Assembly (NCBI RefSeq): GCF_020745735.1
Contig: NC_083448.1
Location: 6,508,006 to 6,572,005, forward strand
From: Hemiscyllium ocellatum
Taxonomy: Eukaryota
DNA: 64,000 bases
Direction of reading: 5' to 3'
How positions within the stretch are numbered: position 1 is the stretch's first letter; every line of letters begins with the position of its first letter. The notes under the pieces were generated by a model. That model was not told the origin of the DNA. It saw only the letters and a program-made list of their open reading frames with translations, and searched no databases. Positions 49,066-51,609 of the stretch are shown piece after piece. The position numbers and the translations under genes were made by a program.

Positions 49066-50493
49066 TATCTTTTTTGGTTCGTCACAGGGAAAGTTCTGGC
49101 ATTGGGTGGTTGGCCAGTTTTATGCTGTGTTGAACATTTCCCCCCATTGGTCCGAGGTGATGGGTTAAACTAGGTCAAATCCCAACATGAAGGCTGCATT
49201 CACGCCAGGTTGCCCCCTCCATTTATGCTCCGCCTGGTTCTATCCATGGAAACAAAACCATTTTAGTAATAGCCTGTGGTGCATAGCTGTCTTTCAAATA
49301 GTGCAAACAATCCAAATGCTGGCTTGCTGCATTTAGCAGTTATCTGGGTTTCAGGGTTTATGCTGAGAAACCACACTGGCTTGCGTTGCTCTTGTACAAT
49401 TCTAGAGTCTCAAACTAACTGGGTTTCTCAAACCCTGAACACACTGATCCTTGCTCCTGTTCTGTCCACTTCCAGTGCATGCATAATCATTTATCTGAAA
49501 GCTGTTCCTTATGCTACTAATGAATGGAGGAAATGGGCTAAGCCTTGGATGTTAATTTTTCCAAGGCATTTTCAGGCCAACTGGTCTTTCTGGCATTCTA
49601 TGTTCAACCGGTATTGTGGCAATCAGTGATAAGATGCTCATAAATTAGGAGGGGAAAGTGGACAGCTGAGTGGGGCAAAGTAAACCAGAGCTGATGGGAA
49701 AAACTTTTTGCCAAAAATTAGACGTTTTGCATCTAATTACACTGACTAGATAGGCTTCAGATGAATAACAATGGGTACTTACATTGAAACCCTTATTTCA
49801 AAATAGCTTACAAAAATTACTCTGAAGTAAACATTGTATCCTTGGGGAAACTGTTTCTACCAAACACACAAGACAAGCTCTCTTTTTCTCAACCCCTTCT
49901 CTCCAAGAGAAATATAAGATTCTGTGTTACTGGCTTCATTGCTGAAAATCTGAGGCTCTGAGTCAATATTGATGATTCTCTTCTCTGTGGACAGCTGTGC
50001 TAAGTTCGTAGGGATGTTTTTACCTCTGAGTCTATCTTTGTGACAATGCTGACTTGGGTATCTTGAAGGAGTTGTGAGATGACGCTACAGAATTTGAAAT
50101 GGTCTGCAAGCTCTGCTGAGGACTTGGGTGAGGAGTTAGCTGGAAGAGCATTTCTCATGTCAGGTTACCAATGCTTTTGTTTTTGCTAAGTTTTCTCATC
50201 TCGAGTGATTGCTTAACCAATTCAGAGGGTCAAGGTGACCCTCAAGGTTGTGACTAGCCTTTTATGGATCATTGCAAAACTTGTAAACCTTATTCCTAGT
50301 TGCATTCACAGCTCCCAGACGGGAAGTGAAAGGCAAGTTTTTAATTTGAAGTCATTCAGCTGGATGAGCAATGAGTACCTCATAATACTGCCATTCCCAA
50401 TGTCAATCACAGGAAACAGCCTGAGTGAGCTAAAACTTGTTTCCCATTCTGCTCTTCTTGAGCAGACGAGCAGGGTTGGCGGGTGACTTACTG

Positions 50494-50628
50494 GAAGAAA
50501 ATGAGGACTGCAGATGCTGGAGATCAGAGCTGAAAATGTGTTGCTGGAAAAGCACAGCAGGTCAGGCAGCATCCAAACAGCAGGAGAATCGACGTTTCGG
50601 GCATAAGCCCTTCTTCAGGAATCTTTCA
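50494..50628 (-). mobile_element. Young single-arm pLTR hammerhead element with a 13-bp TSD
   Basis: TSD gggtgacttactg at 50481-50493 and 50629-50641. The body is near-identical to the long arm of the 38322 element. Confidence 0.93.
50585..50624 (-). ncRNA. Intact minimal type I hammerhead ribozyme motif, sense to POLB transcription
   Basis: 5'-AGAUUC CUGAAGA A GGGC UUAU GCCC GAAA CG UC^GAUUCU-3'. Stem I has 5 of 6 pairs (one U.U). The predicted cut is between 50591 and 50590. Activity untested. Confidence 0.82.
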
Positions 50629-51609
50629 GGGTGACTTACTGCCCCATGTCACACTCTCAGCATCGCAATTGCACACTCCCACCCCACTTTTTGCTCCATT
50701 CTCAAGGAAATTGCGGCTTGTGGGATGTGACAAGAATCAGTCAGCACTTGGCTATCAAAAGGAAAAACTTGGTGCAGTGTATATTGGGAGGGGGAGGATA
50801 TAGGGGAAGGCTAATGTTTTTAAAGGGAACATTTTTGGGATTTGGGTTGCACAGCCTTATCAGAAAGTGCTTCAAACAACCATGTTATGTCTTGCATGAG
50901 ATGAAATGCTCCCTCAGTTCTACCCTGACTGTAAGCCTCCAATTTTGTGGTGCATAGTGCTCAGGATGGTGTTGCACCAATTGCTGCCAGCTGCCATGGC
51001 CTCTCTTAGTCCTGCAGGAAGCTTTGTCTTGGGATTTTCTATGTAAGTGAGATGCGAGGTGGACACACATCAGCTGGTAAATATAGACAGGAGACTGGCT
51101 TCTGAAACATTTTGGCAATGTTGAAATCCAGTTTTCTGAAGTGAAGGCCACGTGTGGTACTTGATTGGCTCACTCATGCCCCACATATCTGAGATGATAA
51201 ACTGTCATATTGCCTTCTGATATATTTTTAATTTATTCTGAAAAGATTGTGTAATTATTTAATATACATTATATTTCCAGGGGACTGCAATACTTAACAC
51301 TATATTGTAATCTATGAGTCAAAACTTTGGGAGAAGTGGGTGACATGTAATGTAAGGGATTAAGTTCCACTGTGGTATGCCAGTGAAATGGCCTACATCA
51401 CAGGAAGTGATGCAGTGTCACATGATCTTGTGCTCTTTTGCAGCCTCCTGGCAACTTGGAACCATAAGAAAGTATTTCCTAAATGAAGCTCCTGTTTTCC
51501 TCCTGCTTCTGTCAGGTCAGTAACTATTCTTCAGCAACTTTTAAATTACTGTGTTCAATTCTGATCTTCCTATGATAGGAAAGATGTCATTAAACCTGAA
51601 GAGGTTCAG

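Follow-up and report, generated by a model that had tools for sequence, protein, structure and literature searches.

We report here on a hammerhead ribozyme motif within a 64,000-nucleotide stretch of the genome of the shark Hemiscyllium ocellatum (NCBI RefSeq assembly GCF_020745735.1, contig NC_083448.1, forward-strand positions 6,508,006 to 6,572,005; the window, numbered below from its first letter). We show that a minimal hammerhead lies in an insertion at 50494-50628 that is flanked by a target site duplication (TSD), that this insertion belongs to a repeat family with the insertion hallmarks of Penelope-like elements (PLEs), and that it is oriented in the sense of the host gene, POLB, within a long intron. 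Based on these results, it is highly probable (approximately 0.88) that the copy is a PLE-derived passenger, which carries its family's own minimal hammerhead ribozyme (min-HHR), was placed by the PLE mechanism, and is not expected to undergo measurable self-cleavage in the POLB pre-mRNA.

The minimal hammerhead and its host intron

A complete minimal hammerhead could be read directly on the minus strand of the insertion (Table 1). Helix I and helix II both form in the minimum free energy (MFE) structure of a 54-nt monomer, and the predicted cut is at 50591/50590. We also searched with a strict min-HHR descriptor that required both conserved boxes and a G-C-closed helix II with a minimum of 4 bp, allowed a bulge, and further called for palindromic positions 15.2/16.2, U16.1, and an H17 that is not G. 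The descriptor matched three loci in the window (38416 and 51976 on the plus strand, 50618 on the minus strand), all of which have the bulged A, and it had no match in 300 first-order Markov random sequences of window size. On the minus strand of the window, no core other than that at 50618 satisfies the descriptor completely. We conclude that the motif is a real, sequence-intact minimal hammerhead and not a chance occurrence. A preliminary description of the locus had reported an intact minimal core at 50481-50641 as the sole unmutated one on the minus strand, with a cut at 50591/50590; the descriptor and our reading of the sequence agree with the former, and the core numbering agrees with the latter.

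The hammerhead models of Rfam gave no match at gathering score in the whole window, and none at E<=10 in 50400-50720, as expected for a hammerhead lacking helix III. The only Rfam match at the locus, snoU82P (E=6), is meaningless. Across the 11 arms of the repeat family described below, helix II is paired in 87.5% of cells. Covariation counts across these in-window arms were no different from those in shuffles, as expected for dead copies that decay neutrally, and support for the fold therefore rests on the definition of the class. We considered an open reading frame (ORF) beginning at an AUG in loop II but rejected it, since this AUG varies among copies (38412 has UUUU) and only 25 more codons precede a stop.

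The host gene was recognized from an open piece on the minus strand (29682-29479), which matches DNA polymerase beta chains in PDB at residues 257-305 (E ~1e-24). A protein-representative search with this piece returned longer POLB proteins, among them P0007, a partial protein of Scyliorhinus torazame, and tblastn with P0007 as query placed three POLB exons on the minus strand. Sense orientation in a POLB intron, as given in the preliminary description, is thus confirmed by the three exons and the PDB match. No upstream POLB exon was found in 35095-64000 by motif words or by tblastn with shark and other POLB sequences at E up to 1000; judging from exon order, the upstream exons would lie beyond 64000. 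The hammerhead is located in an intron of at least 28.9 kb, approximately 15.4 kb upstream of the exon at 35094.

Table 1. Positions in the window of the insertion, the parts of its hammerhead, related fold-backs, and POLB exons
Feature	Position	Strand	Description
Insertion	50494-50628	-	135 bp; apparent 5'-truncated PLE end-piece (hammerhead, ~60-nt body, tail); blastn and alignment
TSD copy, element's 3' side (minus-strand reading)	50481-50493		Exact 13-nt direct repeat GGGTGACTTACTG
TSD copy, element's 5' side (minus-strand reading)	50629-50641		Exact 13-nt direct repeat GGGTGACTTACTG
Tail	50494-50528	-	35 nt; optional 3' extension typical of PLE insertions; tail-less arms stop just before the homologous segment
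Minimal hammerhead core	50591-50618	-	CUGAAGA, bulged A, 4-bp helix II with UUAU loop, GAAA, ACGU, C17; sequence read and descriptor
Helix I, 5' strand	50624-50619	-	AGAUUC; 5/6 positions pair with 50590-50585, one U.U mismatch
C3-A9 box	50618-50612	-	CUGAAGA
Bulged A	50611	-	Unpaired
Helix II	50610-50599	-	GGGC/UUAU/GCCC; 4 bp
G12-A14	50598-50596	-	GAAA box including A15.1, 50598-50595
A15.1 C15.2 G16.2 U16.1	50595-50592	-	ACGU; loop-less palindrome replacing helix III
C17	50591	-	
Helix I, 3' strand	50590-50585	-	GAUUCU; directly 3' of scissile bond
Family-1 fold-back	38322-38539		Head-to-head arms; TSD 16 bp
Family-1 fold-back	39442-39647		Head-to-head arms; TSD 14 bp
Family-1 fold-back	55145-55371		Head-to-head arms; TSD 11 bp
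Fold-back of a second, unrelated family	51855-52057		82-nt arms, just one of them extended by a 34-nt tail; TSD 14 bp, one mismatch
POLB exon, ~aa 235-256	35094-35029	-	tblastn with P0007, 95% identity, E=6e-9; first exon downstream of host intron
POLB exon, aa 257-305	29628-29485	-	PDB POLB, E ~1e-24; tblastn, 95% identity to P0007
POLB last coding exon	15497-15393	-	tblastn

The insertion and its repeat family

A blastn search of the insert against the window identified 11 family arms. Read in the sense of the hammerhead, the family unit consists of the hammerhead, a body of ~60 nt, and an optional segment of ~35 nt ending in ...CUCACUUUCUCC, without poly-A. The 5' truncation is strong, with only the last 100-135 nt of the element present. 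TSDs of family 1 are 13, 16, 14, and 11 bp long. The three family-1 fold-backs were inserted as whole units between their TSDs; in each, the final 33-35 nt are present in one arm, and its counterpart ends earlier, at the homologous ...UUUUCAG.

Several hallmarks of PLE insertions have been described: they are strongly truncated at the 5' end, an inverted copy that is likewise 5'-truncated lies next to them, their TSDs vary in length, a hammerhead is located within the pseudo-long terminal repeat (pLTR) (PMC8557442), and a tail of 30-40 bp is often present at one end only (PMC8557442, PMC11167929). The insertions of the shark family carry these hallmarks, with TSDs of 11-16 bp, head-to-head inverted arms, and a tail on one arm. 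Within this family, we interpret the 50494 copy as one tailed arm, on its own, of a PLE end that lost its 5' part. It is the closest of all copies to the in-window consensus, with a non-CpG identity of 96.9% and 3/3 CpGs kept. Together with the perfect TSD, this indicates that the copy is young, and the youngest among the arms, in line with the earlier description of a young copy with a perfect 13-bp TSD.

Damage to the other cores stems mostly from CpG decay or from losses at the centers of fold-backs. All three CpGs of the in-window consensus are inside the ribozyme, at C11.1-G12, C15.2-G16.2, and C17-G1.1. CpG is a mutational hotspot, and the position of these three dinucleotides explains the recurrent change of GAAA to AAAA, a CpG transition at G12 of C11.1-G12 found in four arms (3 sense, 1 antisense). 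Other CpG transitions in the arms convert ACGU to ACAU or AUGU, and GUCG to GUCA. Minus-strand arms had been reported to be damaged, which we confirm: G12 is replaced by A in the 38320 and 25894 arms, and cores are truncated in the 39444 arm and the family-2 arm (near 51855-51975). These truncated cores are at fold-back junctions and therefore date from the insertion mechanism. According to the alignment, cores are intact in 1/6 sense arms and 1/5 antisense arms. The suggestion of purifying selection on sense cores is thus not borne out, because the damage is strand-symmetric, and CpG decay and fold-back truncation suffice to account for it. Age and CpG decay explain the pattern, and selection need not be invoked.

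Several further observations concern the insertions and their ends. One tailed and one tail-less arm are present in 4/4 fold-backs (three of family 1 and one of the second family), with tails of 33-35 nt, tail-less arms ending at the same homologous site, and TSDs of 11-16 bp. This arrangement fits two reverse-transcription start sites combined with priming on both nicked strands, as described for the anole PLE. If arms pick start sites independently, four heterotypic fold-backs out of four have a probability of P <=0.06, so that coupling is only suggestive. Between the TSD and the usual 5' end, the 50494 copy has (C)UGAAA at 50623-50629 (minus strand), which in reverse complement equals ...UUUCAG of the tail-less end. 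An aborted inverted second arm may have left this stub, although a match of 5-6 nt is only suggestive. Read in the sense of POLB, the target that was duplicated (50629-50641 and 50481-50493) is CAGUAAGUCACCC and contains GUAAGU, a hexamer resembling a 5' splice site. The insertion has thus given the intron, deep inside it, a second copy of a decoy donor motif; no consequence is implied. A short interspersed element transcribed by RNA polymerase III was also considered and rejected, as no tRNA-like A/B boxes were seen (by eye only) and the ends have PLE hallmarks.

Other hammerhead-like sequences were noted in the window. The core of the second family at 51976-52010 on the plus strand has CUGAUGA, a bulged A, GGAGC-GAC-GCUCC, GAAA, an AGCU palindrome, and A17, with a CUA triplet. 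This plus-strand core is complete and antisense to POLB; the minus-strand arm is broken inside the CUGAUGA box at the center of the fold-back. A third hammerhead-like repeat at 36245-36282 on the plus strand has CUGAAGA, A, GAGUC...GACUU, GAAA, and UGUUAAC, and looks like a GAAACGUU-type core in which the CpG at C15.2 decayed to U. Finally, an open piece at 56692-56838 on the plus strand contains ...HHFDWDNTSIQGQTKQRHAREFLEAWHSNWNS..., and ~95 nt past its stop there is a decayed hammerhead near 56935-56975 with GUGAAGA, UGUUACC...GGUAACG, GAAA, and UGUC. The region 56692-56975 may be a candidate remnant of a PLE GIY-YIG endonuclease, comprising its C-terminus and the hammerhead 3' of it.

Passenger or functional ribozyme

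We propose that target-primed reverse transcription would have put the end-piece into the long POLB intron, producing the 13-bp TSD. The role of the min-HHR would be within the PLE life cycle, in the processing of PLE transcripts, probably as dimers and helped by the PLE protein. In the POLB pre-mRNA, the element would be a passenger that is spliced out and degraded with the intron. No measurable self-cleavage would be expected, because the motif is without helix III, loop-loop tertiary contacts, or a nearby intact same-sense partner.

Four alternatives were considered. First, the 50494 copy could be a host-driven source copy: PLE protein made elsewhere would bind POLB read-through RNA and either assist its cleavage or take it as the template of new insertions. 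This copy is the closest to the in-window consensus, and both its tail and the presumed start segment of reverse transcription are preserved. Moreover, the PLE protein of anole assists hammerhead cleavage and initiates reverse transcription internally (PMC11167929). However, the consensus was derived from only 11 arms in one window, and there is no evidence for an active PLE of this family. In addition, the 5' ends of daughter copies are discrete, falling just before CUGA and including no transduced host flank, which read-through templates leave unexplained. Private changes of the 50494 copy include CUGCUGUUUGG, and UUUUCUUC at the tail. We regard a host-driven source copy as very unlikely. 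The specific proposal that POLB read-through makes this copy a substrate of PLE protein, for an assisted cut at 50591/50590 or as template for insertions, is rated slightly lower still. If true, a housekeeping DNA-repair gene would drive a promoterless mini-retroelement.

Second, the motif could be a functional intronic ribozyme that, as an ACGU dimer with another copy, cuts the POLB pre-mRNA and alters intron processing or transcript yield. In favor of this, the core is sequence-intact and sense, helices I and II form in the MFE structure of the 54-nt monomer, and intronic hammerheads occur in amniote genes (PMC6155905). The amniote examples, however, are hammerheads of the canonical type that possess helix III and tertiary contacts, and the Rfam models for them have no match here. 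The insertion is also young and has had no time for conservation. Moreover, in vitro activity of the class is low even in dimers: single min-HHRs had no detectable self-cleavage, and dimeric constructs cleaved weakly, mostly at non-physiological Mg2+ (PMC4209133). The anole PLE hammerhead cuts only when PLE protein is added, and no RNA-seq reads start or end at its site (PMC11167929). Hammerheads without loop-loop contacts need high Mg2+ (PMC4209133).

The topology of a dimer adds a further constraint. We considered the double-hammerhead model of Forster et al. 1988, as summarized in PMC4209133 and PMC6155905. Tracing strand continuity through an ACGU dimer, the core, helix II, and helix I 5' strand of copy A would act on the strand of copy B that contains 16.2-16.1-17-1.x. 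Each core would thus cut its partner's site, and by our own deduction for this locus, 50591/50590 would be cleavable only by a partner with an intact core. The sense-strand family arms in the window besides 50494 (55164, 39444, 38320, 25894, and 1791) all have dead or missing cores according to the alignment, and would therefore be unable to cut 50591/50590; cleavage could at most go the other way, from the 50494 core to these arms. With respect to the 50494 copy, the 55164 arm is located ~4.5 kb upstream, and the 39444 and 38320 arms are ~11-12 kb downstream. These three arms sit in fold-backs that would sequester them.

Predicted energies point in the same direction. For two 54-nt copies, we obtained -19.7 kcal/mol for the active double hammerhead, compared to -20.8 kcal/mol for two monomers and -24.1 kcal/mol for a dimer without hammerheads, so that the active dimer is predicted by the energy model to be disfavored. 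A near-palindrome of 13 nt centered on U16.1, GAAACGUCGAUUC at 50586-50598 (minus strand), gives the most stable predicted homodimer (-24.1 kcal/mol). This homodimer is limited to copies with GAUUC after the cut site and, with G12-A14 buried in it, would be a competitor of the active double hammerhead. In the MFE structure of the full 135-nt element, GAAGAA of the core is paired with the 3' tail. In a 261-nt pre-mRNA context, the host flank GGGCAGUAAG is predicted to pair with the 3' strand of helix II. The 261-nt region is no more structured than shuffles (z = -0.27).

Taken together, cleavage of the POLB transcript is unlikely, and we give a functional intronic ribozyme only a slim chance. 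Of the cleavage through an ACGU dimer proposed in the preliminary description, it stands that the motif could act only through such a dimer. Against the proposal stand the core-dead sense partners in the window and the unfavorable predicted energy of the dimer. An effect on POLB intron processing is not supported by dimer topology, predicted energies, or published assays.

Third, the copy could be a non-LTR retrozyme unit, excised at two hammerheads and circularized into a small circular RNA. Animal retrozymes have type-I hammerheads and derive from PLE pLTRs (bioRxiv 10.64898/2026.07.22.740005). Here, however, there is a single 135-bp unit between TSDs without a tandem head-to-tail copy, and the closest arms of the same sense, at a distance of kilobases, have dead cores, which makes a retrozyme highly implausible. 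Fourth, the probability of a chance resemblance to a hammerhead is practically nil: the absence of an Rfam hammerhead match and of significant covariation among in-window copies would be compatible with it, but it is refuted by the descriptor (0/300 random sequences versus three real loci) and the family alignment, the motif being ancestral to the repeat family and recurring with an AGCU palindrome in the second, unrelated family, and all class features independent of the descriptor being present.

Some observations weigh against the interpretation of the 50494 copy as an inactive PLE passenger. The core itself is without a disabling mutation. A partner in trans could, in principle, come from transcripts of other intact family copies at distant genomic sites. 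Inactivity in vivo and the lack of an effect on POLB are inferred. No ORF for a PLE reverse transcriptase/endonuclease is linked to the family within the window. The candidate endonuclease relic at 56692-56838 had no Pfam match, and its weak Atlas leads (0.84-0.86), to clusters partly carrying PF01541, were not used as evidence.

Relation to known systems and implications

PLE min-HHRs are defined by the conserved boxes, the absence of helix III/loop 3, a palindromic 15.2-16.2, and a G10.1-C11.1 pair (Cervera and de la Pena 2014, PMC4209133). They also have a short helix I without a defined loop 1, and they are found either singly and dispersed or paired on opposite strands at distances of 100-700 bp (PMC4209133). 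Judged by its sequence, the 50494 element has every feature of this class. It shares the type-I layout, the CUGANGA and GAAA boxes, an unpaired nucleotide between A9 and G10.1, and the G10.1-C11.1 pair. The lack of helix III/loop 3 is likewise shared, as are the palindromic ACGU at 15.2-16.2 and an H17 that is not G (C17 here). The short helix I without loop 1 (4-5 bp in the class) has 5/6 positions paired here. Dispersed single copies and opposite-strand pairs spaced by 100-700 bp both occur in the family as well, borne by truncated PLE ends. By contrast, helix II has 4 bp here versus 6-8 bp in the schistosome and Drosophila families. We did not find this shark family named in the literature searched.

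A biochemically characterized PLE for comparison is the Poseidon element PAc of Anolis carolinensis (Frangieh et al. 2024, PMC11167929), of which the purified protein nicks and extends both DNA strands and starts reverse transcription at two internal sites, whose spacing equals the tail (PMC11167929). In PAc, the cut site is ~85-92 nt upstream of the reverse-transcription starts. In the shark family, compared by layout, the ends lie downstream of the cut site by ~61 nt (tail-less) and 97 nt (tailed). The two start sites of PAc are 30-40 nt apart, making the tail, and nicking of both strands fits the head-to-head arms observed here. Different from PAc, there is no ORF start within helix II and no protein-coding part attached.

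Amniote intronic hammerheads likewise are type-I hammerheads in sense orientation in introns of protein-coding genes and are thought to be derived from retroelement hammerheads. Only they have a helix III hairpin, loop 1-loop 2 contacts, cleavage as monomers, and conservation across amniote classes. In comparison with amniote intronic HH9/HH10 and canonical type-I hammerheads, the 50494 copy is a recent insertion and does not match the Rfam covariance models. The double hammerheads of newt satellite 2 and avocado sunblotch viroid (via PMC6155905, PMC4209133) share an unstable or absent helix III and a palindromic center, and two copies must pair to form the extended helix III and two composite active sites (PMC6155905, PMC4209133). 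These are tandem repeats on one RNA, with the partner always close, whereas the 50494 copy is solitary.

In conclusion, the element is a further copy, in a shark, of an abundant class that was already described in 2014, and it is probably without an effect on its host gene. It can serve as a calibration, in that a sequence-intact min-HHR located sense in an intron is not to be read as regulatory without RNA-end data. Two points from this locus can be used in judging similar cases: in a dimer, the core would cut the other copy, and the CpGs of the consensus are all within the ribozyme.

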